From assembly GCA_020184695.1 (NCBI GenBank), contig JAANOX010000238.1:124001-188000 (forward strand): 64,000 nucleotides of DNA. Direction: 5' to 3'. Shown here one piece after another: positions 8,601-46,447 of the stretch; the first letter of the stretch is position 1; each line of letters begins with the position of its first letter. The stretch is from Histomonas meleagridis 2922-C6/04-290x. Its lineage: Eukaryota > Protista > Parabasalia. The notes beneath the pieces are model-generated. The model saw nothing but the letters and a program-made list of their open reading frames with translations, was not told where the DNA came from and ran no database searches. The position numbers and the translations under genes were made by a program.

Positions 8601-9542
8601 ATTAAGTGCATGGATTTCTTCTTCTTTTGACTTATTTACCTCTTCAAGTGACTTCTTTTCTTCTTCAATTTTAATTATCTTTTCTTCATTTTCTTTATTT
8701 TTACTTTCAATTTCTTTTATCTTTTCATCTTTCATTTTGTTCTCTTCTTCAATTTTAATGATTTTCTCTTCATTTTCTTTATTCTGATTTTCGATTTCTT
8801 TTATCTTTTCTTCTTTTGACTGATACATTTGTTCAAGCGATTTCTTTTCTTCTTCAATTTTTATTATTTTTTCTTCATTTAATTTGGTTTTATTTTCCAT
8901 TTCCTTTATCTTATCATCCTTTGATTTGTTTGCTTCTTCCAATTTTTGTATTTTTTCTTCATTTTCTTTGATTCTGTTTTCTGTTTCTTTTATTTTTTCT
9001 TCGTTATTTTTGTTTATTTCTTCAATTTTTTGAATTATTCGATTTTTTGTATTTAATTCTTCTTGAAGTGTTTGGTTATTCTTTTCTAAATTGTTAATTT
9101 GTGATTCCATCTTTAGTTTTTCTTCGGTGAGCGACTTAATTTCATTCATTAAATCATTGGCCTTTCGTTGATTTTGTTCTGAATTTTGAATTTCCTCATT
9201 TTCTATTTCACTGATACGCTCTTTCAATTTTTGGATTTCAGCTTTCATTCTTGAAAACTCATTTTGATTTTCTCCACTTAGTTTTCTTTTCATTATTAAT
9301 TCACCAAGTTTTCTCAGAGCAGAAAATTTTATTGCTTCTACATCACTTACCCATTTACCATTATCTGAAGTTTCGGATACAATTTGAGAAATTATGTTAA
9401 TCGGATCAATCAATGCAGAATCTAATTTCTCTTTAATTTTCATAAAATCAACAGTAAAATTTGATGTTAAGCATTCATCCATTAGAGCCAACCCACGTTG
9501 GTAGTGATTTCCCTCATCTGTAGGGAAATTTGTTTTGCTCAT
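5622..9542 (-). CDS. Long repetitive Glu/Lys-rich coiled-coil protein (~1306 aa)
   Basis: ORF from ATG 9542 (MSKTNF); central ~49-aa repeats built from 14/21-aa heptad modules (KIEEENKMKDEKIKEIENKNKE...). Confidence 0.85.
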   Translation of the reverse strand: MSKTNFPTDEGNHYQRGLALMDECLTSNFTVDFMKIKEKLDSALIDPINIISQIVSETSDNGKWVSDVEAIKFSALRKLGELIMKRKLSGENQNEFSRMKAEIQKLKERISEIENEEIQNSEQNQRKANDLMNEIKSLTEEKLKMESQINNLEKNNQTLQEELNTKNRIIQKIEEINKNNEEKIKETENRIKENEEKIQKLEEANKSKDDKIKEMENKTKLNEEKIIKIEEEKKSLEQMYQSKEEKIKEIENQNKENEEKIIKIEEENKMKDEKIKEIESKNKENEEKIIKIEEEKKSLEEVNKSKEEEIHALNEENKMKEEKIIKIEEEKKSLEELNMSKDEKIKEIEEENKMKDEKITKIENKNKENEEKIIKIEEENKMKDEKIKEIENKNKEKEEKIIKIEEEKKTLEEVNQSKDEKIQKIEEENKMKDEKIKEIENKNKEKEEKIIKIEEEKNTLEEVNQSKDEKIKRIEEENKMKDEKIKEIENQNKESEEKIIKIEEEKKTLEEVNKSKDEKLSEIEKEKNSLKEKINANEEMMSIIKADNNTIEKKILSIEEEKRSLQERNRQNEEKIIEMEEKNKENEEKITKIEEENKLKEEKISEMENKNKQNEENIHKLNEEKKSLEELNKAKEEKISKMEEKNKTNEERIKEMEKENKKNEESIQTLNEEKKALEELNKAKEEKISEMEEENKTNEERIKEMENRNKENEEKIQILNEEKKSLEELNKAKEEKIQTLEKENKLKEEKNLILEEENKSNENKIKEIEEDNKQKDEKIKEIENKNKENEEKILKMSANIKSNEEKIQKIEKDNKIKEENISKLEELKKSNEEKIQKIEKENETLEEDNKHKEEKIKANEAENETYRSKLQSTENLLVHSNDIIRNAQNAFQTIYNLFDFKENQNNLSPNISTADINSNLNSFITFADKQFTNYRNTINEYKIKEQKLKEINKNNENKMQKLNENISKQLLQVNELQNDIKIRDQKLDEAMKSIEKHKKLEAKAMQVAKKCKSLDASLSHLNKIDQDTVNLIIKAFPTLKSNYSNDLPLNKLIELFINQIVSNFNTKFTSHFTSLNEFVQQFNSKYDVFISQFTEFKSKFEQFLSNFNDIINSYNDTLQIVFPQYPTVSTNIDSKAIHRKIIKLQAILLSTFQLIPNITVPHKLQIYNSALGLRKCLLSNKVDNNELFKDISVTELKNTNGKHCGRIYELEKANKEMMQSLYESMPLKDIAKMLCEMLEIESVENADEKKIVELLAMIKEKVEEAEGVKKRFAAYKEVVNALLQGIGNKAPPNIMPIIKKLHNAKV

Positions 9543-10038
9543 GGACGAACGTATTTCCAACGGTTAGAATTGTATTGTTTACATGTCAAACAAAAACTTC
9601 TTGGTTTGTTCGAAAATATTCGATTTTATTCCACTTTTTGAACACGATTCTATTAAAAACGATCAAAATCACTGCTTTTCAACCAATTTATGTGACCGAT
9701 TTTAAAAATTCTAATTTCTCAAAAATCCTAACATTTTGTGAATTATAAACATTAAGGAGTAAAATGTCTTCTCTAAGGCACTCTCAAATTAGAAACTATC
9801 TAAAAATTTTCTCATCTATTAAATGATATATTGATAAAATTTTTTTAAGTTTTTTCCTTGTGTCTTGTCTTTGGTGATATTGTAAATTCATAAGATATCT
9901 GTGGTAAAACATTCTCAGTATAATTTCACGCGACCTAAATGGTCATTTCGTTTTTTCATACAAAAGAAGTTTTTTTCTTTTTATTAAATTTTTCTAACGA
10001 CAACATGTAACGCATACAAATTGGACGGTTATTTCAGA

Positions 10039-11250
10039 ATGAGTGGCTTCAACCCCAATGGTTACGACCCGAATTTTGGCGTAAACGGCGAACAGGAACA
10101 AGACCCAAACAGGCAAGACAACCCAAACCGAACAAACAATGGGGGAAGGGATCTCCAAACAGATCAAATAAATTATGCATATCAAATTCTCAAACGCCAA
10201 CTTGATACGCCCGAAGCTTTTGACTTCGAAAATCCGCAGAAGAGTTTATTTTCAAATTTCTTTAAAGAACCAACCTATGCACTCCATCTTACTTCAATAG
10301 ATTGGTCAATTGAAAGCAATAATGCCTTTTTCGACAATGACAGCATCAAGCTGAGATATGCTCTAAACTCCAATACCTTAGTTTGTGCAATTGCTTTCAA
10401 TTCCACCGGAGATTTATTCTCATTTTCGAACGGGCGAACTCTTTTCATTCTAGATTCAAATGATTGTTCTCTCATTTTAAATTATGCGCTACCACATTAC
10501 GTCAAACAAATAGAAATGCATACTCGAGTATTAAAATTTTCCCCAGATAACAAATATATTGCACTTAATGGAAGCTGCTATCGTATTCTAGTGTACTCTC
10601 TCGAAGAAAATACATTTGTAGGAAGTCTTGAAGGTCATTATGATGTTGTTTCATCAATTTTATTTACATCAGATTCCAAATATATGCTTACTGGAGGCTA
10701 CGATGGCGTTATTTGTGTATGGAGCTTTCCAGATTTTACACTTGTCAAACGTATTGAATACAATATGAATGAAGAACGACAGTCAATTGTATCATTAGCA
10801 CTAAGTAACGATGACCAATATCTTTTCATTTCTTTTCTTTCAGGTGCTGTAGGTTTATGTAATTCTTCATTTACTGTTCCGATGAATACAATTATCGAAT
10901 ATCAGGACTCATTATTACGTTCTTCTCTTTCCAACAATAACAAAATGATTGCAACGGCTTCTAAAGATAATACACTTAAAATATGGGATATTCAAGATTT
11001 AGTTGTATGTAAGCAAAACTTGATTGGTCATACAAGTTTTGTTGTTTCTTGTTGTTTTAGTCCTAATGATGAATATTTATTTTCAGGGTCGAAAGATGAA
11101 AGCATTAAATTATGGAAACAAGAAACAGGCGAATTACTCTGTACAATACATGCACATAAAAATACTGTGTTCCAAATCGAACATCACCCGAGAAGAAACT
11201 CTTTTTTGACGTGCGGCGGCGACGGAATACTTTGTATGTGGGACTATTGA
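10039..11250 (+). CDS. WD40-repeat protein (Tup1-like architecture)
   Basis: Multiple GH...WD-type repeats (GHYDVVSSILF...W, SKDNTLKIWD, GHTSFVVSCCFS, GDGILCMWD); ATG at 10039. Confidence 0.9.
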   Translation: MSGFNPNGYDPNFGVNGEQEQDPNRQDNPNRTNNGGRDLQTDQINYAYQILKRQLDTPEAFDFENPQKSLFSNFFKEPTYALHLTSIDWSIESNNAFFDNDSIKLRYALNSNTLVCAIAFNSTGDLFSFSNGRTLFILDSNDCSLILNYALPHYVKQIEMHTRVLKFSPDNKYIALNGSCYRILVYSLEENTFVGSLEGHYDVVSSILFTSDSKYMLTGGYDGVICVWSFPDFTLVKRIEYNMNEERQSIVSLALSNDDQYLFISFLSGAVGLCNSSFTVPMNTIIEYQDSLLRSSLSNNNKMIATASKDNTLKIWDIQDLVVCKQNLIGHTSFVVSCCFSPNDEYLFSGSKDESIKLWKQETGELLCTIHAHKNTVFQIEHHPRRNSFLTCGGDGILCMWDY

Positions 11251-13039: not shown

Positions 13040-13280
13040 GCTTAATTCAGCATTGATATCAATTCCTTCTTGTTTAAGAAGTAATTTTGCGATTTACTTG
13101 TAACCATTTAGATGCAATTATAAACACTGTATTAAATAAATTCCAAACATTATTTTGAAATATGAGATTATTAAAATAAGTAAAAGAAATATATATCTTT
13201 ATCATTAATATCAATTTCTTTTTGATATAATATTCTAATATATATTTAACAAGCTCAATATTTGGTGATTCAATCAAACA
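13040..13280 (-). pseudogene. Ankyrin-repeat remnant carrying the same AT-rich insert as the 35.5-37.7 kb array
   Basis: Minus strand reads IDINDKD-[64-nt insert containing TTCAAAATAATGTTTGGA]-TVFIIAS...LLxQEGIDINAE, with a frameshift. Confidence 0.75.
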
Positions 13281-16076: not shown

Positions 16077-16868
16077 TTTTGAAAATTAACGTACGAAAAC
16101 GGTTTTATGATCAAATTCCGATCTTTCATTTTCACAAGCACAAAGTTTTACAGTTTTATGTGTAAAATCAACGATAGAAAGATTTAGTCTCATCTTTGAA
16201 CTAACTCATTAGTTAATGAAATACTTTTTAATTTTGTGGTTATCATTTTTACTGTGTGAGTAATGAAAATTGTTATTGGATTTTCCATGTATATCTCATT
16301 GTATTTCATGTGACCTTAAGCAAAAAACCCACAAACATTAAAATATTTTGCTGAAGTTTCAATATGCAAACATAAAATGGTTAATTTTGATGAATAATTT
16401 TTTCTTTCTCACTGTTTATTTTGAATGATACCTGCAAAAAAAAGTCATATCAAGAGAATAAGATGTTTAAAGAACATTCAAAGAAGGAAGCAACACACTT
16501 CTTTTTGCTAATAATTGGTCACCGGAAAATTTCTTTTGCAGCCATAGCATTGAAAACACTCGGTTAATTGACTTTTCGTAAAATTAATCAACACAATTTT
16601 TTGTGTAAATTTTCGGAAATTACGATGATCATTCATTTTATAACGACGGTTAGGGAGGTTAAATGTTCAAAAGTGAAGTAAACCAAGCAACATTTTTCAA
16701 TGGATTGACCCACTCTGTCAATGAATTATTTTACAGTTGAATTTAGATCAATTAGTGACCATTGCTCTGAATTCTCCAACTGTTCAATTGAACTGTTATA
16801 GAAAAGTAATGGCGAAAGCTTTTATATGGTTTACAAGTATATAAATGTTGCACAAATCTGGTATTCCG

Positions 16869-19772
16869 ATGATTGCTGCAACTATTATAATTTTATTTGC
16901 AAATATTTGTCAAGAACATCTTGCTAAAGAGAGTAATTCATTAGTTGAACAAAAAATCGATGGCAATATTTTGATCGAGAAAATTGATTTACCTATCATA
17001 CAGACTTTATCAACACATTTACATAATTTTAAATATAACCATGTAAATACAATTCGTAGATCTTCAATCCAAAGCTATACAACATCAACGATATTAAAAA
17101 GTAAATATTTAAATATTAATTCTGTTACATATCGTTTATTTGGTTACAATGCTTCTGGTCTATTTAAAGATAATTTGAATATTTTGTTTACTATTTCTTT
17201 GATTATGATCTTCACTTTTTTGTATATTAATAAAATTTTTTCTAAAAAATTCCAAGAGAAATATGATTTATATAATCTCCCTTTCTTTTTGTTTTGCTCT
17301 TGTTCATTACAAACACTAATCAATGAAGATAGTCTTTATATATCTATGACTACTGAATTTACAAATCAGTATAAAAATATAACGAAAACCCTAATCATTG
17401 AAGGTGAAATTGTCACAATTCCATCACGTACTTTTTCACAGTGGCCTTTATTAACTCGTGTTGAAATTGGAGGACAAGTTGAGACAATCGAGACATATGC
17501 ATTTGAAGCATGTAGTCAACTACAAACAGTTTCACTTGGAACTAGTGTTTTAACTATTGATAGTTATTCATTTTCATCATGTACGTCATTAAAATCCATT
17601 CTTATACCAAGTGGAGTTACCACAATTGGATCAAATGTATTTTCATCATGTACTAATCTTGTCTCCATTTCTGTCGTAACATCAAATCAAAATTATGCTA
17701 ATGATGATAATGGCATATTATATAACAAAGATTTAACACAACTTATTTGTTATCCGATTGGAATACAAAGTCAAACATTTACACTTCCAACCACTGTAAA
17801 TTCTATTGCAGAATATGCATTTCGTTATTGTTCATATTTAACAACAGTTACAATTGGAAATAATGTTAATACCATTAATGATCATGCATTTGAATACTGT
17901 ACATCAATAAGCTCAATTACAATTCCTGGGTCAATTACATTATTTGGTTCTAATATATTTTATATGTGTACAGGTCTTCAAACAATTGTTTTCGAAGAAG
18001 GTTTAACAGAAATTGGTTCATATATGTTTCAATCATGTTCGAATATAAAAACAGTTGAAATTCCAAGTTCACTTCAATCGATTGCATCTAATCCATTTTA
18101 TGATTGTAATCAACTTGAGTCCATTAATGTTAATTCTAACAATGTATATTTCTCTAATAATAATGACGATGGAGTACTTTATAATAAAGGCAAAACAGAA
18201 CTTATAATTTATCCAGTCGGAAGACAAGCAACTTCATATACAATACCTGATACAGTTATTACAATTCGTTCATATGCATTTGTTTCAAGTTCTAAATTAG
18301 AAACAATTATATTTGGACAAAAGGTTGAAACTATTGGAGTCTCAGCATTTCAATCATCAAAGAAATTTACTAATATTATAATTCCTGATTCAGTTACCAC
18401 CATTGAAGCTTCTGCATTTTTCTTATGTTCTGATTTACATTCAATAACATTTGGAAGAAACTTAAAAACTATTGGTGATTCAGCATTTCGATTTTGTTCA
18501 AATCTAGAATGTATTTACTTTACTGGTGATTCTTCACCAGACGTTGGGACTAATGCATTTTCATCGATTGGAATTTCTGCAACTTCTGTAATAACACTTC
18601 CATCATATAAAGAAAATTATTTTGGTAATTTACCTGCATCAATGTATCCAGTTGGGGAATGTGAACCACTTCCAACACTTACATTTACTCAATCAAATAC
18701 ATTTACAAAGTCAAATACATTCTCGAATACTTTTACTCAATCAAATACTTTTAGTCAATCAAACACATTTAGTCAATCAAACACATTCACTAAATCGAAT
18801 CCATTTACTCAATCAAACACATTCACTCAGTCAAATACTTTTAGTCAATCAAACACATTTTCACAGTCAAACACGTTTTCACAATCAAATACATTCTCAG
18901 ACACATTTACAGCATCAGAGACATTTTCGAATACATTTACTCAATCTAATTCATTTAGTCAATCAAACACATTTTCAGAGTCAAATACATTCTCTAATAC
19001 CTTTACAAAATCGAATACTTTTAGTCAATCTAACACATATTCTCAATCGAATACTTTTAGTCAATCGAATACATATTCTCAATCAAATACATTTACTCAA
19101 TCAAATACATTTACTCAATCAAATACATTTACTCAATCAAATACATATACACAGTCGAATACATATACACAATCTAACACTTATACTCAATCGAATACAT
19201 TAACGAGATCGAACACATTTCCTAAATCAAATGTATTTACTCGATCGAACACATACACTCAAAGTAATGTATTTACATTATCGAATACATTTACTGAATC
19301 ATTACCACCCGATGTAACAGTCACTAATTCGATTGTACATGTTATTTCTGAAACTAACACAAGAGTGCATAGTGTATTTGCAACAAATTCATACACTTAT
19401 ACATATTTCAATTCAGGTTACACATTTATATTGGCCGACTTTCAAATTGATATGACTACAATGTCATTAATCACAACATATTATAGTTTTTATTCAGAAT
19501 TAATAACACAAGTGGATCAACATGAAAAAGAAAACTCAACAAATGTTGGACTTATTGTTGGTATTGTTATCGCTGCTGTTGTTATAGTCGCAGCACTTAT
19601 CATCGCATTGTTATATATAAGGAATAAAAAGACAATAGTAGAAGAAAAAGTGGTAAATGATGAAGTAGAAGAAAAAATGGTCGACTTCAGGACAGGCTTC
19701 CAAAATGAAGACCTCGATGAAGACCCATTTGCAACGGATTTTGTGGAAGATAATAAAATCGTCAAAATTTAA
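16869..19772 (+). CDS. BspA-like TpLRR surface protein with Thr/Ser stalk, TM helix and acidic DPF tail
   Basis: Signal-like MIAATIIILF at ATG 16869; TpLRR repeats (TIGSNVFSSCTNLVSI); (TFTQSN)n stalk; TM GLIVGIVIAAVVIVAALIIALLY; tail DEDPFATDF. Confidence 0.9.
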   Translation: MIAATIIILFANICQEHLAKESNSLVEQKIDGNILIEKIDLPIIQTLSTHLHNFKYNHVNTIRRSSIQSYTTSTILKSKYLNINSVTYRLFGYNASGLFKDNLNILFTISLIMIFTFLYINKIFSKKFQEKYDLYNLPFFLFCSCSLQTLINEDSLYISMTTEFTNQYKNITKTLIIEGEIVTIPSRTFSQWPLLTRVEIGGQVETIETYAFEACSQLQTVSLGTSVLTIDSYSFSSCTSLKSILIPSGVTTIGSNVFSSCTNLVSISVVTSNQNYANDDNGILYNKDLTQLICYPIGIQSQTFTLPTTVNSIAEYAFRYCSYLTTVTIGNNVNTINDHAFEYCTSISSITIPGSITLFGSNIFYMCTGLQTIVFEEGLTEIGSYMFQSCSNIKTVEIPSSLQSIASNPFYDCNQLESINVNSNNVYFSNNNDDGVLYNKGKTELIIYPVGRQATSYTIPDTVITIRSYAFVSSSKLETIIFGQKVETIGVSAFQSSKKFTNIIIPDSVTTIEASAFFLCSDLHSITFGRNLKTIGDSAFRFCSNLECIYFTGDSSPDVGTNAFSSIGISATSVITLPSYKENYFGNLPASMYPVGECEPLPTLTFTQSNTFTKSNTFSNTFTQSNTFSQSNTFSQSNTFTKSNPFTQSNTFTQSNTFSQSNTFSQSNTFSQSNTFSDTFTASETFSNTFTQSNSFSQSNTFSESNTFSNTFTKSNTFSQSNTYSQSNTFSQSNTYSQSNTFTQSNTFTQSNTFTQSNTYTQSNTYTQSNTYTQSNTLTRSNTFPKSNVFTRSNTYTQSNVFTLSNTFTESLPPDVTVTNSIVHVISETNTRVHSVFATNSYTYTYFNSGYTFILADFQIDMTTMSLITTYYSFYSELITQVDQHEKENSTNVGLIVGIVIAAVVIVAALIIALLYIRNKKTIVEEKVVNDEVEEKMVDFRTGFQNEDLDEDPFATDFVEDNKIVKI
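18680..19295 (+). repeat. 18-bp coding tandem repeat (TFTQSN hexapeptide stalk)
   Basis: About 30 degenerate copies of ACATTTACTCAATCAAAT. Confidence 0.9.
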
Positions 19773-20282
19773 TAAATTACAGATATAAATTACAGAAACG
19801 TAATTTTGCGAACTATTTTGAATATGAGTTATATTACAAAAAAGTTCGAATTAAGTAAAAAATCAACAAAAAAAATTTTTTTTTCGAATTAGAAATTGAT
19901 ATTTTTAAAAAATTTATAATGATAATGATGAAACATAACACTTAGTTCGGTGCATTCAGTTTCGTAAGGAAATTAATGGAATGACCAAAAATTATGTATT
20001 AGTCTGAAATCCAACATTATTAATAATAATATTAATTTCATATTCGTCAAAAAGAAATTTAACTACTTTAATATGATTATTCTATATGCAATAGATTGTG
20101 TTATTTTAAATAATTTCCAAATTTTATTATGAAATATCAAATAAGAAAATAAGTATCTTCTGCATTAAAATCAATTCAATAATTAAATAAAATAAGATAT
20201 TAAATAAGAAAAGAAGCTCAATTTAGTAACACAATTAATAACTTAATATTTATATTATATAAAATAAAAAAACATTTCGATT

Positions 20283-28738: not shown

Positions 28739-30232
28739 TTAGTTGTTTTGTTTTGCTTGTTGTTCTTGGAAATTTAATACATCATATAAAGTTGGCACAG
28801 TAAATGAATTTTGAGTTGGATCGAAAGAGAAGGAGCTTTCAGTCACCATTACAAACCTTACAATGCATGCAGATTCATCTTTCAATGTATATAATGATCC
28901 ATGATCACTTAAAGATGCATTAGGCACTACTTCACACAAAGCTATCATTGTTAAATTCTTTGGGAGCTCACTTGCGATGTACTTATTACTCATTTTTGAT
29001 GAATAATCAAATGACATACTAGAATTCTTTGCAAAATATATTCCTTCGCCATAAGCAGTGCCATGTATTACACCGCCAGGTACTTTTGACATGTTTTTAA
29101 GCCCATTTCTAACAATAGAATGCCATCTATCAGCACCACTTCCATGCCACATATAAAGACTTCTTCCATGATTTTTTTTCTTCTTTTTTTGAAATATATC
29201 TTCTGCAAATTGATCTGAGATCAATGTCATAAATTGGAAATTTGTTGGAATATTATGGTTTTGTTGTTTAACTTGTAATGATGAAGGTAATGTAATAATA
29301 TGGGACTTATTAGACAACAAAAGCCATCGTAAAAAATCTAAAGTATCTTTTCCAAATTGTCGGGTGATGTCGGCGTCTGTTAAGCAGCTTGATGCGATTT
29401 GGCGCATTGAAGGTAATTGGCTCAAAAGATTTTTCCCAACATTAAATAGGTTGAGAGGTGGTGATGGGTTACAATAACCACTTTTAAGAGATGTCCCAAA
29501 TATGGTAAAAAGAAAATCTGCTGCAAGTGGATCACGTCGGATTTCTTGGGCAACTGATGTACCAACACCGATCTCTTGGAATGCAACAGAACATAAACGT
29601 GATTCACATATAGAAGGTTTAATCCCAGAGTTTGGTAATCGTTTTCTACAAATGCAACAATGATTATTAAGATCTAAAAAAGCTTCAACAATTTCATAGA
29701 TAAGATAGAGAAGATGACAATTATTGAGGTCAATAAGTTGGGTAGTTATGGGCTTACAACGATTGTTGAAATTATTTGAATTCGAAATTTCAGAAAAAAC
29801 ATAGGAAATAGAAGAGTAAGTGGGCTTGGGCTTATAAGAGGGAGAAAAGAAATTGCGAATGGCTGCTTCAACTAATGGTCTCCCAATATAATTGCGTTTA
29901 TATAAAGGATGAGATACATCAAGTTTTTCAATACCTGAATGCCAGTTATAGCCTGAAATGATAACATTGATTTCTAAAAGTATTTTGGAAAAATGAAATC
30001 CTCCGATCATTTGTATGGATGGAGGTAATACTGAACTAGGAATTGCAATGTAAATGTTACTGCCTGTAGCTTTAATTGTGTATGTTTTGAAAAAGGAAGA
30101 GAATATTTTTATATTATAATTTATTTGAGAAAAATCTGGGATGACAAATCCGATGTCATTTGATGAATCAATTTTCATATCAAAGTCTTCATCATCCCCA
30201 ATAATGATTTCTTCCTCATCAGAAAATTCCAT
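28739..30232 (-). CDS. PARP-family ADP-ribosyltransferase (PARP6/8-like, probably mono-ART)
   Basis: WHGS...WHSIVRNGL and AYGEGIYFA motifs; Cys/His cluster HCCICR...C.S.LC; the catalytic Glu position appears to be Leu. Confidence 0.85.
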   Translation of the reverse strand: MEFSDEEEIIIGDDEDFDMKIDSSNDIGFVIPDFSQINYNIKIFSSFFKTYTIKATGSNIYIAIPSSVLPPSIQMIGGFHFSKILLEINVIISGYNWHSGIEKLDVSHPLYKRNYIGRPLVEAAIRNFFSPSYKPKPTYSSISYVFSEISNSNNFNNRCKPITTQLIDLNNCHLLYLIYEIVEAFLDLNNHCCICRKRLPNSGIKPSICESRLCSVAFQEIGVGTSVAQEIRRDPLAADFLFTIFGTSLKSGYCNPSPPLNLFNVGKNLLSQLPSMRQIASSCLTDADITRQFGKDTLDFLRWLLLSNKSHIITLPSSLQVKQQNHNIPTNFQFMTLISDQFAEDIFQKKKKKNHGRSLYMWHGSGADRWHSIVRNGLKNMSKVPGGVIHGTAYGEGIYFAKNSSMSFDYSSKMSNKYIASELPKNLTMIALCEVVPNASLSDHGSLYTLKDESACIVRFVMVTESSFSFDPTQNSFTVPTLYDVLNFQEQQAKQNN

Positions 30233-33914: not shown

Positions 33915-34080
33915 TTACATGAAATTGACAAAAAGAAGAGCAGTTTTAAATAATTCATAAAAAATCCAAAAATTATTTTTGAACATAACATTAATAAAAC
34001 AAATTTTAATAAAAGCAAATAAATATTTTTTACGTTAAGATCAATTCCTTCTTGTTCAAGAAGTAACTTAACTATTTTGT
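33915..34080 (-). pseudogene. Inverted ankyrin-repeat remnant with 80-nt insert
   Basis: Minus strand: KIVKLLLEQEGIDLNVKN-[80 nt, 34024-33945]-TALLFVNFM*. Confidence 0.75.
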
Positions 34081-34536: not shown

Positions 34537-37500
34537 ATGACATATATTAGACTTGTTACGAAAATAAATGATATTGATGTCTATTTAGAATTTCTTAAAG
34601 GAATTGAAACATTTGAAGAAAACAATAAAATCAAATCAAAAATCCTTCAAATGTTCTCATGTTTTCTTGATAAAAAGCACCCCTACGAATCATTTTATAT
34701 TATGAATAAGATGAATGAACAAAATATTCTTGATTCAAAATATATTAAAAATTTGAGCAAACCTAATTCGGTATATTATTCTGATACTCAAAGTAATTAT
34801 TATTATGTAAAAATTTTAAAGAATGATTTCGAACTTCATAAAAAATATGTTAAAGAAGGAAATAATCCGAATGAAATTGCACAAATAATTCGAAATGATG
34901 AAATCGAAAAACTTCAAGAAATATCATCACATACAAATTTCGATTTTAATCAATATGTTATACCATCACTTTATGAAAAATATTCATTTATTAATAAAGA
35001 TAATGTTTCACTCATTGATTATGCAGCATTTTTTGGATCTGTTAAATGTTTTAAATATTTACTTATGAATGGTGCTAAAGTAGAAAATACAGGTAAATAT
35101 GCAATTTCAGGTGGAAATGAAGAAATTATTCATTTATGTGAACAAAATCATTCTTCATTTAAAGATGCATATGAAACAGCAATTCAATACCATAAAAATG
35201 ATATATTTAAATATCTTTATGAGAATAAAATCGATCAATTTAATGATTTGGAATTTTTAGGAGAAAAATGTATTTTATATTATAATTTTGAAATTTTATC
35301 ATATTTAATTGAAGAAGGAATGAAAATTAATGATAAAATTATTAATACATCAGCAAAAATTGGAAATCTATATCTTACAAAACATTTCCTTCAAAATAAA
35401 CAAATTCCAAAAGATATATTAAATTATTCATTTGATTCTAAAAATATTGAACATTTTAAATATATTTTAGAACAAGAAGGAATTGATATTAATGCTAAAG
35501 ATATCTATTTGTTTTATTTAATATTTATTTTAATAATTTTGGATTTCAAAATAATATTTGGAAATGATTTAATTTATTTAGAACAGCGCTTATTTGTGCA
35601 TCTTTATATAGTTATACAGAAATAGTCAAATTACTTCTTGAACAAAAAGGAATTGATATAAATGCAAAAGATATTAATTTGTTTTATTTAAGATATATTT
35701 CAATAATTTGATATTTCAAAATAATATTTGGAAATTATTTAAATTATTTCAAACAGCACTTATATTAGCATCTTTTTTTGGTCATGTAGAAATCGTTCAA
35801 TTCCTTCTAAAACATAAAGAAATTGATATAAATGCAAAAGATATTAATTTGTTTTATTTAAGATATATTTCAATAATTTGATATTTCAAAATAATATTTG
35901 GAAATTATTTAAATTATTTCGAACAGCACTTATGGAAGCATCTAATAAAGGTTATAAAGGTTATATAGATATTGTTAAATTACTTCTTGAACATAAAGAA
36001 ATTTATATAAATGCAAAAGATATTAATTTGTTTTAATAATTTAATATTTCAAAATAATATTTGGAAATTATTTAAATTATTTCAAACAGCACTTTTGTTT
36101 GCGTCTTATTGTGGGTATGAAAAAATAATTAAATTACTTCTCAAAAAAAATGAGATTGATCTTATAAAATGTACTTATTTATTTTATTTAATATATGTTT
36201 TAATAATATATTGTTTCAAATTAATATTTGGAAATTATTTCAATCGTTTTGCAAAGTTCTTATTTTAGCATCTAAAGAAGGTTTCATTGAAATTGTTAAA
36301 TTTATTCATGAACAAAAAGGAATTAATGTCAATACTAAATATATTTTTTTGTTTTAGTTAGTGTTTATTTGATTGGTTTGATGTCTGTTTTAATGATTTT
36401 TATATTTTATTATATTTGGAAATTATTTAAATTATTTCAAACAGCACTTATTAAAGCATCTTTTTTTGGTCACGTAGAAATCGTTCAATTACTTCTAAAA
36501 CATAAAGAAATTGATATCAATGCAGAAGATATTCATTTGTTTTATATAATCTTCGTTGTAATAATTTGATATTATAAAATAATATTTGGAAATTATATAA
36601 ATTATATTATACATCTCTTATGTGTGCAACTCACTTTGGATTTATAGAAATCGTTAAATTACTTCTTGAACAAGAAGGAATTGATATTAATACTAAAGAT
36701 ATTTATTTGTCATATTTAGAATTTATTTTAATAATTTTTTATTTCAAAATAATATTTGAAAATTATTTAAATTATTTAGAACAGCACTTATGTTAGCATC
36801 TTTAAATGGTCATACAGAAATAGTTAAATTACTTCTTGAACAAGAAGGAATTGATATTAATGCTAAAGATATTTGTTTATTTAATTTGAAATTTATATTA
36901 ATAATTTGACATTTCAAAATAATATTTGAAAATTATTTAAATTATTTAGAACAGCACTTATGTTAGCATCTTTAAATGGTCATACAGAAATCGTTAAATT
37001 ACTTCTTGAACAAGAAGGAATTGATATTAATACTAAAGATATTTATTTGTCATATTTAGAATTTATTTTAATAATTTTTTATTTCAAAATAATATTTGGA
37101 AATGATTTAAATTATTTCAAACAGCACTTATTTTGGCATCTTTATATGGTCGTACAGAAATAGTTAAATTACTTCTTGAACAAGAAGTAATTGACATTAA
37201 TGCTGAAAATATTTATTTGTTTTATTTGATATTTATTTTAATAATTTAAATTTTCAAAATAATATTTGGGAATTATTTAAATTATTTGAAACATCACTTA
37301 TGTTAGCATCTTTAAATGGTCATACAGAAATAGTTAAATTACTTCTTGAACAAGAAGGAATTGAAATAAATGCTAAAAATATTTATTTATTTTGTTTAAT
37401 CTTTTTTTGAAATATTTAATATTTGAAGATTTGATTTGAAATTTTTTCATGATATTTAGAACAGCACTACAATGTGCATCAAAATTTGGATACATAAATA

Positions 37501-37738
37501 TAATTAAATTACTTCTTGAACAAGAAGGAATTGATATTAATGCTAAAGATATATATTTGTTTTGTTTAAAATTTATTATAATAATTTAAGATATCAAAAC
37601 AATATTTGGAAATGATTTAATTTATTTAAAACAGCGCTTTTTATAGTATCACAAAAAGGTTATACAGAAATAAAAAAATTATTTCTTGAAAGATTGGGAA
37701 TTGACATTTATTATAAAGACAAGAATTATCAAGGTTAA
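34537..37738 (+). CDS. DUF3447-type ankyrin protein whose 13 C-terminal ankyrin repeats are each interrupted by a frame-breaking insert
   Basis: N-terminal ORF has SLIDYAAFFGSVKCFKYL and AISGGNEEIIHLCEQ; 13 stop-free segments TALxxASxxGxxEIVKLLLEQEGIDINAKD follow; the last runs to TAA at 37736-37738. Confidence 0.75.
35503..37630 (+). repeat. ~170-bp tandem unit (90-nt ankyrin-coding segment + 80-nt AT-rich insert) x13
   Basis: Inserts at 35503-35582, 35673-35752, 35843-35922, 36022-36085, 36173-36252, 36343-36440, 36531-36610, 36701-36780, 36871-36950, 37041-37120, 37211-37290, 37381-37460, 37551-37630. Confidence 0.92.
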
Positions 37739-44189: not shown

Positions 44190-45908
44190 TTATGCACTGT
44201 TAATTCTTCCTTTCAATGTGTTCAAGTTTTGTAATATGTCGTTATAGCAGCTAATTCCCTGACTAAAGCCGCCTTTAACGGACACCATATCTGTTTGGTA
44301 TTGCTGCAAGTTCATCTCCTTACACTTCCTCATTTCGGCAACTCTTCGCGATACTTCCATGAAAATTGGATTTAGCTCCGATGATACTTCGTTAAATCTC
44401 TTGTTGACTTCGATTTGGATGTTAACGATATCACGAGTGTCTATCTCTCCCGCGTACTTCTGAATCAAATCTTGTGCAATATCATTAGCTTTTCTTTGTA
44501 GATTTACAATTTGTGTCCGTAGTCCACTAAGAACATTGAATGCGTCAGACATTGGCTGTATGAGTGACATCGCTTTTCCGTATTGCATTTCGAAGAAGTT
44601 ATCAGTGTTTGCTGCTTGTTCGATTATACCCACGTAACGTGTGTAATGTTGGATGTCATTAGGTGCATACATTTGAAGGTAATCACCACGTTGTCGAACT
44701 ATGACTGAGATTGATGAAAGAGTTTCATTTGCTAAATTACGTTTTGCATATAACTCTGCGATTAAGTTTTGTAACTCATTAGCTGTCGCCGCTGGGTAAT
44801 ATTGTAAGCATTCATCAATGTCATGTAATGCACGTGATGCTTCGCTTTGGATGTTGTTGTGGCGCTGGCCGATAGACTGTACAATTGTGTTGGAAAGTGA
44901 CATGTTCAACGGCGCAATTTGAATGGTCGAGTTGAGGAAGTCAAACTTTGATGGGCAGTCAAACTTGTTGGACGCTGGAATAGCAGCTGGCGTGGCTGGA
45001 ACAGGCTCTAAATAAATGCCTTTGTTGTCGACTTCAGTTTGATTAAAGATGACTGAAAATGGTGATAATAAAGATTCATACATTAATCTAGTATTAACCT
45101 TTTTGCTGACAGGTGGAAGTAAAGACATGGCTGTGCGGCCGTATGAGAGACCATTGCCATACTCACCTTTTGTAAACTTGTTTAATGCCATCTCAACATT
45201 AGCGATAAAATCAAAGTAGTTGGAATGCGCTCGTTGACATGGATCACAGTTGTTATAGCATGCAGAAAGTAATTTGGCTAATTTAGCTATTAATAATGAA
45301 TTTTCAGGTGATTTGATTAGAGCAGTTGCAATTGTTGCATGATTATAAAACGTGTCAATATACACAGAAAGAGCATCAATGTTAGTCCTTGGGACAATTT
45401 GAGAAAATTCATCATGATAAAATTGAGACAATATGTTACATAGAGCACGTGAGCCAGTAACATTTGTGATAAATGCTTGGATGGAATCGAGAGTGTTAAG
45501 TTTAATTTGACATGCTTCATTTAAGAGGCAAATTATGATGGAATATGCCATGCAAAAGATATCAAAATCAACTGTGCTATGTGAAACTTTAGACCATGTG
45601 AATGTGATTCCAGCACCTTGCGTAGAGATGTCAATTCCTTCTGTGAGTGTTTTTACAAGTTTGATATAATCAGCAAACAATTGCCAATTTTCTTTTGGAA
45701 GTGCTAGATTCCTCAGTATTTGTTGGCGGATGTTATCTAATCTACTAATGTTTTGTGAGAAATTGTCAGGAAGTGTTAATTGCAATTTCTGAATAAGGTA
45801 AGTATATAGAAGACGGCCAACATCAACAGGTGCTGGATCTAGTGGTTTAAATGGAATCATTGGTGGACTTTCGCATGTGAACCTGATCACGTATTTATCA
45901 GACTGCAT
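44190..45908 (-). CDS. BRO1-domain-like (ALIX/Bro1-type) protein
   Basis: IPFKP..P.DV...Y, LDNIRQ, FADYIKLVKTL and ITFTW fit the BRO1 N-terminal pattern; helical V-domain-like tail; TCATTTTTT Inr upstream of ATG 45908. Confidence 0.6.
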   Translation of the reverse strand: MQSDKYVIRFTCESPPMIPFKPLDPAPVDVGRLLYTYLIQKLQLTLPDNFSQNISRLDNIRQQILRNLALPKENWQLFADYIKLVKTLTEGIDISTQGAGITFTWSKVSHSTVDFDIFCMAYSIIICLLNEACQIKLNTLDSIQAFITNVTGSRALCNILSQFYHDEFSQIVPRTNIDALSVYIDTFYNHATIATALIKSPENSLLIAKLAKLLSACYNNCDPCQRAHSNYFDFIANVEMALNKFTKGEYGNGLSYGRTAMSLLPPVSKKVNTRLMYESLLSPFSVIFNQTEVDNKGIYLEPVPATPAAIPASNKFDCPSKFDFLNSTIQIAPLNMSLSNTIVQSIGQRHNNIQSEASRALHDIDECLQYYPAATANELQNLIAELYAKRNLANETLSSISVIVRQRGDYLQMYAPNDIQHYTRYVGIIEQAANTDNFFEMQYGKAMSLIQPMSDAFNVLSGLRTQIVNLQRKANDIAQDLIQKYAGEIDTRDIVNIQIEVNKRFNEVSSELNPIFMEVSRRVAEMRKCKEMNLQQYQTDMVSVKGGFSQGISCYNDILQNLNTLKGRINSA

Positions 45909-46447
45909 AAACAAAAAATGAAATTCGCTTATTTACATAAACTTATCAAATATTTCACCGGTAACAGAATATTCTGTCAAAAACTGGCAGCCTCCAAATT
46001 TGCTAATTGTTTGGATTGGCAAAAATTGGTAAAAGATGAAAATGCCATTAGTGAAATGAGTGTGGAAAAATATGTAAAAAATTATTAAAGATAAAATATT
46101 TTAGAGATTTTTATTGTTTTGAGATCTTATGTCGGAATGTGATGCATTAGATCATACGAAATTCTAATATAAATCAATATTCACAGACAACATTTAACAA
46201 ATAGATTTAGAGTAAATGTGTTTATGAAATTTTATCGCCGATCTACAAATAAGTCACAAAATTTTCCAAAAAATATGATTTTGCATTGAATACTTTACTG
46301 AATTTCGTCAGTTTTGTCGCTGGAAAAAAATAAAATTAAATTTAATTAAAAGATATCTTGAATGAAACATGTTTAAATCGTTGAAAATAATTCGGAATAG
46401 ATGTTTATGATTTTTTTTTTAAATTCGGAAATCGATTTCCTTTTTTC

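Follow-up and report, generated by a model that had tools for sequence, protein, structure and literature searches.

In animal ankyrin genes each repeat is carried by one exon of 99 nucleotides (nt), an arrangement that arose via tandem exon duplication. Nuclear introns with non-canonical ends are also known, among them the non-conventional introns of euglenids and the non-GT-AG introns of Fritillaria borealis. In Paramecium, internal eliminated sequences (IESs), which are bounded by TA and carry the consensus TAYAGYNR, are removed from the somatic DNA. In this study, we analyzed a 64,000-nt stretch of contig JAANOX010000238.1 (positions 124,001 to 188,000 of the forward strand; hereafter the window) and focused on one gene of the parabasalid DUF3447-ankyrin family. 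All 13 split ankyrin repeats of this gene are interrupted at the same point by a T-rich, frame-breaking and conserved insert. Judged from the DNA sequence, the inserts are probably removed or skipped during expression. Boundary-defined removal at the RNA level, as non-canonical introns, is the best explanation, and we give it an even chance of being correct.

The inserts resemble the introns of one-intron-per-repeat genes in that position and phase are the same in each repeat through duplication of a repeat-plus-intron unit. However, the introns of such genes are canonical and variable in length and sequence, whereas the inserts in the window hardly deviate from 80 nt, and the columns of their alignment are conserved between genera. 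The euglenid and F. borealis introns are similar because precise removal is implied without GT-AG ends. In euglenid non-conventional introns the two ends form a stable helix, but no helix is predicted for the window inserts, and neither group of introns is a single conserved 80-nt family restricted to one protein-repeat loop. Paramecium IESs are likewise short, A/T-rich, frame-breaking, numerous and constrained in length, although the TAYAGYNR consensus is not seen at the insert ends. The gap of T4 gene 60 and the mitochondrial bypassing elements (byps) of Magnusiomyces are also short, non-coding and frame-breaking, and some copies have a stop directly after the last upstream codon. Those gaps measure 27-55 nt, in contrast to the 71 nt proposed here for each of 13 gaps in a nuclear gene, with neither matched codons nor a hairpin.

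Among parabasalids, the closest described elements are the spliceosomal introns of Trichomonas (type A, 56-196 nt; type B, 23-28 nt), which are short and in some cases reside in ankyrin-repeat genes (PMC12316389). Those that were validated have GT-AG ends, a GTAYGT/GTWYWD 5' motif and ACTAACACACAG or TCTAAC..AACAG at the 3' end, and occur once or twice per gene at most; about 84 are reported from Trichomonas stableri (PMC12316389). An insert size of ~71 nt falls within the type A range, and one Tritrichomonas foetus relative of the insert, GT...TTAATACTTAG, resembles the fused branch-site/3' splice-site motif of Trichomonas (PMC12316389). The window inserts differ from these introns in that there are 13 in one gene, the predicted 3' cut is without AG, AT outnumbers GT at the 5' end and no copy of the motif is present. 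A few percent of the genes annotated in Histomonas meleagridis, T. foetus and Tritrichomonas musculus have predicted introns, and the insert element is undescribed there (PMC8529796, PMC13735942, PMC11978803). Nor did our literature search turn up any account of a conserved insert that recurs in ankyrin loops. The pipeline used for intron discovery in parabasalids drops junctions without canonical motifs (PMC12316389).

A further parallel is offered by the "split genes" of Trichomonas vaginalis, in which adjacent open reading frames (ORFs), with frameshifts or stops between them, encode successive parts of one protein, ankyrin families included (bioRxiv 10.64898/2026.08.31.748405). The genome project counted 923 frameshift-split genes of unexplained meaning, and a 2026 preprint describes long mature transcripts across several predicted genes, including ankyrin genes (bioRxiv 10.64898/2026.08.31.748405). 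However, the breaks in these genes are single points or frameshifts, and a conserved repeated insert is not reported there (bioRxiv 10.64898/2026.08.31.748405).

Anatomy and conservation of the repeat-plus-insert unit

By direct reading and translation, the gene extends on the forward strand from ATG 34537 to TAA 37736-37738. An N-terminal part of 322 amino acids (aa; 34537..35502) is followed by 13 inserts that alternate with ankyrin segments (Table 1). Pfam detected DUF3447 (8.5e-11), Ank_2 (2.7e-10) and Ank_3, Ank_4 and Ank in the N-terminus, which places the protein in the parabasalid DUF3447-ankyrin family. The closest named relatives of this part are from H. meleagridis (42-67% identity), and its best hits are proteins of short gut-metagenome contigs (about 50% identity); more distant relatives occur in T. 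foetus and T. musculus. In all 13 repeats the insert lies 3' of the ..IN(A/T)K(D/N) codon and 5' of the T(A/S)L codon, and it measures 80 nt in 11 repeats, 64 nt in one and 98 nt in one. The original prediction had described this layout, and our direct reading and Tandem Repeats Finder (period 170 nt, 13.0 copies, 76% matches, 35470-37690) reproduced it. The window holds 13 copies of a 24-nt core of the insert, whereas shuffled sequence predicts 0.00.

The segments match the ankyrin helix-turn-helix consensus, TALxxASxxGHxEIVKLLLEQxGIDINAKD. Ten of them are 90 nt long (30 aa), one is 99 nt (33 aa) and one 87 nt (29 aa), so that indels occur only as whole codons. Translation bore out the claim that these 12 internal segments are stop-free and that the last segment, without an insert, ends in TAA. 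No continuous ORF spans the gene because the segments rotate through the three frames according to insert length. It had also been claimed that every repeat is split: the split point is indeed identical throughout, but this is due to tandem duplication of one repeat-plus-insert unit and not to 13 separate insertions. Units 8-10 are nearly identical, which points to recent duplication. The near identity of inserts 8 and 10, and likewise of segments 8 and 9 (36701-37120), suggests that a two-unit block of 340 nt was recently duplicated.

Table 1. Coordinates of the parts of the split ankyrin gene in the window
Feature	Position	Strand	Basis or remark
N-terminal coding part, 322 aa, ends ..GIDINAKD	34537..35502	+	ORF from ATG, Pfam
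Insert 1, 80 nt	35503..35582	+	incoming frame continues to TAG 35623-35625, giving a 362-aa ORF
Ankyrin segment 1, 30 aa, TALICAS..INAKD	35583..35672	+	reading and translation
Insert 2, 80 nt	35673..35752	+	alignment of inserts
Ankyrin segment 2, 30 aa	35753..35842	+	
Insert 3, 80 nt	35843..35922	+	
Ankyrin segment 3, 33 aa, 3-codon insertion in helix-turn region	35923..36021	+	
Insert 4, 64 nt, internal 16-nt deletion at about columns 10-25	36022..36085	+	next segment intact despite other class modulo 3
Ankyrin segment 4, 29 aa	36086..36172	+	
Insert 5, 80 nt	36173..36252	+	
Ankyrin segment 5, 30 aa, most divergent (KVLILAS..)	36253..36342	+	
Insert 6, 98 nt, 18 extra nt in 5' half	36343..36440	+	
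Ankyrin segment 6, 30 aa	36441..36530	+	
Insert 7, 80 nt	36531..36610	+	open incoming and outgoing frames without overlap
Ankyrin segment 7, 30 aa	36611..36700	+	
Insert 8, 80 nt	36701..36780	+	GT...AG pair of 71 nt that restores the frame
Ankyrin segment 8, 30 aa	36781..36870	+	
Insert 9, 80 nt	36871..36950	+	open frames without overlap
Ankyrin segment 9, 30 aa	36951..37040	+	
Insert 10, 80 nt	37041..37120	+	
Ankyrin segment 10, 30 aa	37121..37210	+	
Insert 11, 80 nt	37211..37290	+	
Ankyrin segment 11, 30 aa	37291..37380	+	
Insert 12, 80 nt, most divergent insert	37381..37460	+	open frames without overlap
Ankyrin segment 12, 30 aa	37461..37550	+	
Insert 13, 80 nt	37551..37630	+	open frames without overlap
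Last ankyrin segment and C-terminus, 35 aa, TAA 37736-37738	37631..37738	+	

A profile search with a nucleotide profile of the insert and its flanks detected 52 copies in the DNA examined. Two gut-metagenome paralogues (L001 and L002) carry inserts of exactly 80 nt each at the same codon boundary. At one H. meleagridis locus (L003; GCA_020186115.1), an annotated protein ending ..DINAQNI stops within an 80-nt insert, and three further repeat-plus-80-nt units follow. The four inserts of this array are succeeded by a 505-aa ORF in the frame of the last half-repeat (MFKTALMWAS...). A second H. meleagridis locus (L005) holds ~26 units with the inserts in register. Ungapped identity between loci is 57-65% in register and falls to 36-44% when the copies are slid by 1-7 nt, so the insert copies are homologous in each column. 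A favoured base is seen in nearly all columns; T stands at column 35 in 36 of 36 copies and G at column 58 in 34. Inserts with both flanking segments intact are 80 nt long in 25 cases, the others being 60, 64 (two), 75, 81 and 83 nt, and inserts of 60, 64, 75, 81, 83, 91 and 98 nt all precede intact segments.

T-rich frame-breaking inserts of ~19 to ~220 nt occupy the same loops in TRFO_21112, TRFO_20532 and TRFO_31612 of T. foetus. TRFO_21112 also contains a 72-nt in-frame sequence, GTAGGC...TTTTTAATACTTAG (L006 7993-8064), two codons upstream of the position of the window's insert site. This intron candidate is unannotated and its last codon is the annotated stop, the deposited model reading in and stopping. 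A canonical-looking relative in a nearby loop position suggests that the inserts may be of spliceosomal origin. If the 72-nt candidate is spliced, the TRFO_21112 protein would extend through at least one more ankyrin repeat. A similar in-frame insert of 87 nt begins at L006 7522 of the same gene.

Several other loci depart from the common form. On H. meleagridis WSYJ01000186.1 (L003 6001-9614), only four repeat-plus-80-nt units separate two annotated genes, a 506-aa "cask-interacting protein" and the 505-aa ORF, which has a Ser/Thr/Pro-rich tail and no Pfam domain; the two may be one gene of ~1,140 aa. In one paralogue on gut metagenome contig ERZ25039387 (L004 1921-2002), the insert is 63 nt long and would be read through in frame, adding 21 residues (KIYFNDFIFQNNIWGFLKLFK) to the ankyrin loop. 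Two L005 junctions (16105-16139 and 17074-17108) have a frame-breaking insert of only ~17-29 nt, depending on end placement, in which the 80-nt element is represented by its 3' part only; the distance of ~970 nt between the two junctions suggests a higher-order repeat. Also in L005, a broken ORF (9300-10420) with the motif ..PYSPDIAPSDFW.. stands between the N-terminal gene P0018 and the long ankyrin array. We take this motif to be typical of mariner/Tc1 transposases, and Pfam gave no match for the longest piece of the ORF. Decayed repeat-plus-insert copies are dispersed in the window itself (13128-13212, 20103-20171 and 33931-34042), all on the reverse strand and intergenic. Their ankyrin parts contain both indels and stop codons, and in two of the copies the insert is reduced in length (64 and 53 nt). 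These three copies give a picture of neutral decay of the unit and indicate that it is dispersed in the genome.

The coding segments do not resemble such decayed copies. Over the arrays, 39 of 43 segments are stop-free against 15.6 expected (36%; binomial P ~1e-13), and the corresponding counts are 13 of 13 against 5.5 in the window (P ~1.5e-5) and 21 of 25 against 8.3 in L005; these P values overstate the significance, since units were treated as independent but share ancestry. The difference from expectation is nevertheless large. The expectation was derived from the codon-wise family consensus, to which the same number of random substitutions as found in each segment was applied. Compared with other loci, the window segments are conserved in the order of codon positions 2 > 1 > 3, with identities of 0.80, 0.66 and 0.60, respectively. 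The original prediction held that the coding frame is under selection. This stands between loci, where the stop-free excess, the codon positions and the shared architecture make the signal clear, whereas within one array it is weak. If the coding frames are under selection, the inserts must be taken out or skipped.

Boundaries of the insert and tests of splicing

The boundaries were mapped by stop-codon depletion over 36 copies of 80 nt. The last insert codon (columns 78-80, outgoing frame) is never a stop, although the base frequencies of its three columns predict 6.5 stops, and none of 20,000 column shuffles was as low. It encodes Q, R, K, E, W, Y, N or S, the variable residue that precedes the ankyrin-loop Thr. 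Columns 75-77 are TTT (Phe) in 28 of the 36 copies, and columns 72-74 are unprotected (stops in 7 of 36; 5.0 expected). At the other end, the insert opens with an Ile or Val codon, and ATT, ATC and ATA are used synonymously. Of ten aligned family proteins, five have a stop at the second insert codon and end ..KDI; the first insert of L003 has a stop there as well. The interior has stops in all three frames and is not translated: columns 37-39 hold a stop in 19 of 36 copies, and in the three frames only 7, 0 and 8 of the 36 inserts are stop-free.

On this mapping, the first codon and the last two codons of the insert (~3 + 6 nt) read as coding. Removal of ~71 nt (columns 4-74, or 5-75 where column 4 is T) would produce 33-aa repeats with the junction ..KD-I-F-x-TAL. 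This length had been proposed before, together with 68 nt, and is the best fit to the stop-codon mapping. Alternatively, 68 nt would be removed and a fourth residue kept, as compared with the insert-free junction of one paralogue (L001 1848-1874), N-V-M-F-E-S-A-L, which has Phe-x before S/T. The exact cut sites are ambiguous by 1-2 nt because of T runs. Since the 3' cut lies within A-T-T-T (columns 74-78), it cannot follow AG; that the predicted 3' cut is never preceded by AG is a firm result of the mapping.

In an exhaustive scan of cut-site pairs, no GT-AG, GC-AG or AT-AC solution was both conserved and compatible with the ankyrin consensus. AT...AC solutions were ruled out because they delete TAL codons. 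The 5' dinucleotide AT or GT is present in 29 + 5 of the 36 copies at columns 1-2 and in 22 + 7 at columns 5-6. A U12-type reading, judged by 5' /RTATCCTT, a branch TCCTTRAY 10-15 nt from the 3' end and an AC or AG terminus, was rejected because only 5 of 8-9 consensus positions match and the phases misfit. Frame-restoring GT-AG pairs are rare in the scanned junctions of H. meleagridis and T. foetus. The extended 5' motif GTAYGT/GTWYWD and the fused branch/3' motif RCTAACACAYAG or TCTAAC..AACAG (PMC12316389) are absent from the inserts, and the window contains two near-matches to the canonical parabasalid 3' motif against 1.04 expected, which is the level of chance. RNAalifold predicted 0 conserved pairs in 16 sequences. 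Rfam, which would have revealed a structured RNA gene or a self-splicing intron, returned no match in the window. Both insert ends are T-rich and non-complementary; the terminal inverted repeats and target-site duplication expected of introners or miniature inverted-repeat transposable elements were not found. As expected of U2-type introns, in which removal is defined by the boundaries and internal length change is tolerated, inserts of 60-98 nt and of all classes modulo 3 are followed by intact segments.

The most conserved block of the insert is TTTGG(A)AAT (columns 55-63), which in the incoming frame encodes the F-G-N of the classic ankyrin loop. None of the length variants affects columns 55-80. 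The block could be an internal recognition element, that is, a branch or protein-binding site, or a sign of micro-exon anatomy. The ideas that the insert encodes a hydrophobic peptide (tail anchor), or that TGA is read as sense, were discarded: TGA ends 7 of 22 long ORFs, and the inserts have stops in all frames. The insert position that has TGA in many copies varies among TGA, TGG and TTG.

All close family members called from genomes and metagenomes end within the first insert. A library search with the N-terminus gave 23 close representatives, none with a spliced array, and length differences between members in the cluster look-ups reflect repeat number or 1-nt indels. A search with the C-terminal part of H. 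meleagridis P0017 yielded no transcript-derived match, and neither did a look-up of exact matches to the ORF in the window. The search with the 505-aa downstream ORF also gave no transcript match, but it did not return the ORF itself and so says little. Only unrelated generic ankyrin genes were returned by a metagenome scan for insert-free junctions. Among T. musculus and metagenome/Logan sequences, P0188 and P0074, as well as P0197 and P0199, are near-identical long DUF3447 proteins in which 1-2-nt indels alter the C-terminus; these differences are either strain differences or homopolymer errors in one assembly.

Weighing intron-like removal against other explanations

Several observations weigh against intron-like removal. 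The insert ends are not GT-AG, GC-AG or AT-AC. A frame-restoring GT...AG pair was found in only one scanned junction of the window (insert 8, 71 nt), in a scan that missed some junctions, among them insert 1, which has GT and AG at the same positions. The parabasalid branch/3' motif ACTAACACACAG (PMC12316389) is absent, and the 63 validated introns of T. vaginalis all have GT-AG ends and extended motifs, with no gene containing more than two of them (PMC12316389). The whole insert is conserved position by position, including the TTTGG block (columns 55-59), and its 80-nt length is mostly kept without indels, which is unusual for an intron. Library and cluster look-ups found no transcript, cDNA or peptide sequence of the insert-bearing family. 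The ATG of the 505-aa ORF in L003 lies inside the last insert, and this ORF could therefore be a separate gene. Finally, the ratio of non-synonymous to synonymous differences (pN/pS) within the array of the window gene is only 0.73, and nucleotide divergence is 0.23 in segments and 0.20 in inserts.

The last two values would also be expected if the genes were simply truncated, their proteins ending in the first insert with the N-terminus, one repeat and a short tail. The downstream DNA would then be an amplified minisatellite or pseudogene array that looks intact via recent duplication or gene conversion. The ends of the called family members, the near identity of units 8-10, the satellite-like 170-nt period, the decayed copies in the window and the position of the L005 array, with four broken segments, behind a transposase-like remnant all agree with truncation. 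Nevertheless, we consider it unlikely. It is opposed by the excess of stop-free segments (39 of 43), the conservation by codon position between genera, the sparing of the last insert codon from stops in the outgoing frame only, and segment indels that are whole codons. Moreover, the architecture is common to three genera although the N-termini are only 42-53% identical, and gene conversion is unable to act between species. It is also conceivable, though we hold it to be quite unlikely, that TTT-GGA-AAT (columns 55-63, incoming frame) is a 9-nt micro-exon giving the ankyrin loop F-G-x, flanked by an in-frame element of ~51-54 nt and a frame-breaking element of 11-17 nt; the mature RNA would then contain TTTGGAAAT. 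D-x-F-G-x-TAL is a classic ankyrin loop, and the near-invariant G at column 58 (34 of 36) begins a codon, columns 58-60, that reads GGA, GGT or GGG (all Gly), GAA or GAT, although G is scarce elsewhere in the insert. Consistent with a micro-exon, the length variants leave columns 55-80 untouched, and the two short L005 junctions (16105-16139 and 17074-17108) keep the 3' part only, with ..NAK-G-K followed by 17-23 frame-breaking nt. However, a piece of 11-17 nt, smaller than any known intron, would have to be cut without splice signals. The block is out of the incoming frame in the 64-nt and 60-nt variants, and codon 52-54 is a stop in 8 of 36 inserts. As coding in the outgoing frame clearly includes the last insert codon, the loop would also grow to 5-6 residues.

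The inserts might instead stay in the mRNA, the ribosome crossing them by -1 frameshifting, stop readthrough or hopping. Parabasalids are without the diphthamide synthesis (dph) genes (PMC6143161), a loss that possibly favours such recoding and for which we keep it as a minor rival. With a length of 80 or 83 nt, most inserts fall into the class 2 modulo 3, and many in the window contain the slippery heptamer T_TTA_AAT in the incoming frame (columns 66-72); the unexplained frameshift-split genes of T. vaginalis and the readthrough transcripts reported there (bioRxiv 10.64898/2026.08.31.748405) point the same way. We regard recoding as very unlikely, since stops occur in every frame within the inserts, the open frames do not overlap in 4 of 13 window inserts (7, 9, 12 and 13), and inserts of the other classes modulo 3 (60, 64, 75, 81 and 91 nt) still precede intact segments. 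The heptamer is missing from most Histomonas inserts, 13 serial events would leave a negligible yield, and the product would hold 13 hydrophobic loops of 27 aa. Hopping like that of T4 gene 60 or the byps, which the original prediction had offered as one route, fails on the same frames and mixed lengths, on the lack of conserved predicted RNA structure and on the lack of matching take-off and landing codons, the best pair (TTT/TTT, 45%) lying past codons with stops. Excision from the DNA of expressing cells, in the manner of an IES or a transposon, appears highly improbable. The length is strongly conserved, and short A/T-rich direct repeats (TTATTT, columns 3-8 and 72-77) are present at both ends, but deletion between them would leave 11 nt, out of frame. 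Terminal inverted repeats are absent, and the insert-bearing form is present in at least four independent assemblies, from cultures and metagenomes, with no insert-free allele seen. To our knowledge, parabasalids have no split between germline and soma.

Non-canonical introns therefore have to be considered with these points on both sides. The pattern of inserts is real, conserved across genera and outside any canonical mechanism. Insert lengths vary while the segments remain intact, which fits boundary-defined excision and not a frame-dependent mechanism, and the 505-aa ORF of H. meleagridis is in frame with the last split repeat upstream of it. RNA-level, intron-like excision in total, the micro-exon variant included, has in our estimation an even or slightly better chance. 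The sequences show the anatomy of the unit, its in-register conservation between genera, selection on the segments and a non-coding insert interior; we infer removal as such, removal at the RNA level and the exact cut sites. In the history that we propose, one ancestral ankyrin repeat would have gained the insert in the loop that joins ..INAKD to TAL... This combined unit of repeat and insert would then have multiplied by tandem duplication and with the expansion of the DUF3447-ankyrin family, before the lineages of Histomonas and of the window split. Each insert would be an intervening sequence that is short (~71 nt), U-rich and non-canonical at its ends, and would be cut from the pre-mRNA via recognition of its boundaries. 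The mature junction would be approximately ..INAKD-I-F-x-TAL.., so that the repeats would have the canonical 33 aa and the whole protein ~790 aa.

Genomic context and significance

The window has 30% G+C, long unbroken ORFs and no tRNA genes. By domain, its proteins comprise DUF3447-ankyrin, BspA-type LRR, Ras, PARP and BRO1 proteins. Its 22 long ORFs end in TAA (11), TGA (7) and TAG (4), and all three stops are in normal use. Together with the relatives of the split gene, these features mark the window as nuclear DNA of a tritrichomonad-type parabasalid close to Histomonas. The neighbours of the split gene include a BspA-type leucine-rich-repeat protein (LRR_5, 1.2e-70; 16845-19772, forward strand), a PARP catalytic-domain protein (28739-30232, reverse strand) and a BRO1-domain protein (44190-45914, reverse strand). 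Several ORFs of 800-1,300 aa in the window gave no Pfam match.

Parabasalids are held to be almost intron-free. If the proposed removal is true, at least 13 non-canonical intervening sequences per gene would depart from that picture. Gene counts, protein lengths and "pseudogene" calls would then be systematically wrong for the largest families of Histomonas, Tritrichomonas and their relatives, the H. meleagridis models that end inside the first insert being an example. It would also mean that a reduced spliceosome, or other machinery, recognizes introns by undescribed rules. We tentatively suggest, as a rather doubtful extension, that tritrichomonads may have a dedicated non-GT-AG excision of a conserved U-rich element, either by a divergent splice-site rule of a reduced spliceosome or by a non-spliceosomal cut-and-join guided by the insert. 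The ankyrin genes of one genome would then undergo dozens to hundreds of such excisions, and part of the frameshift-split genes would be explained. Removal of the inserts, if confirmed, would provide a concrete candidate cause for the 2007 puzzle of the ~900 frameshift-split genes of Trichomonas.

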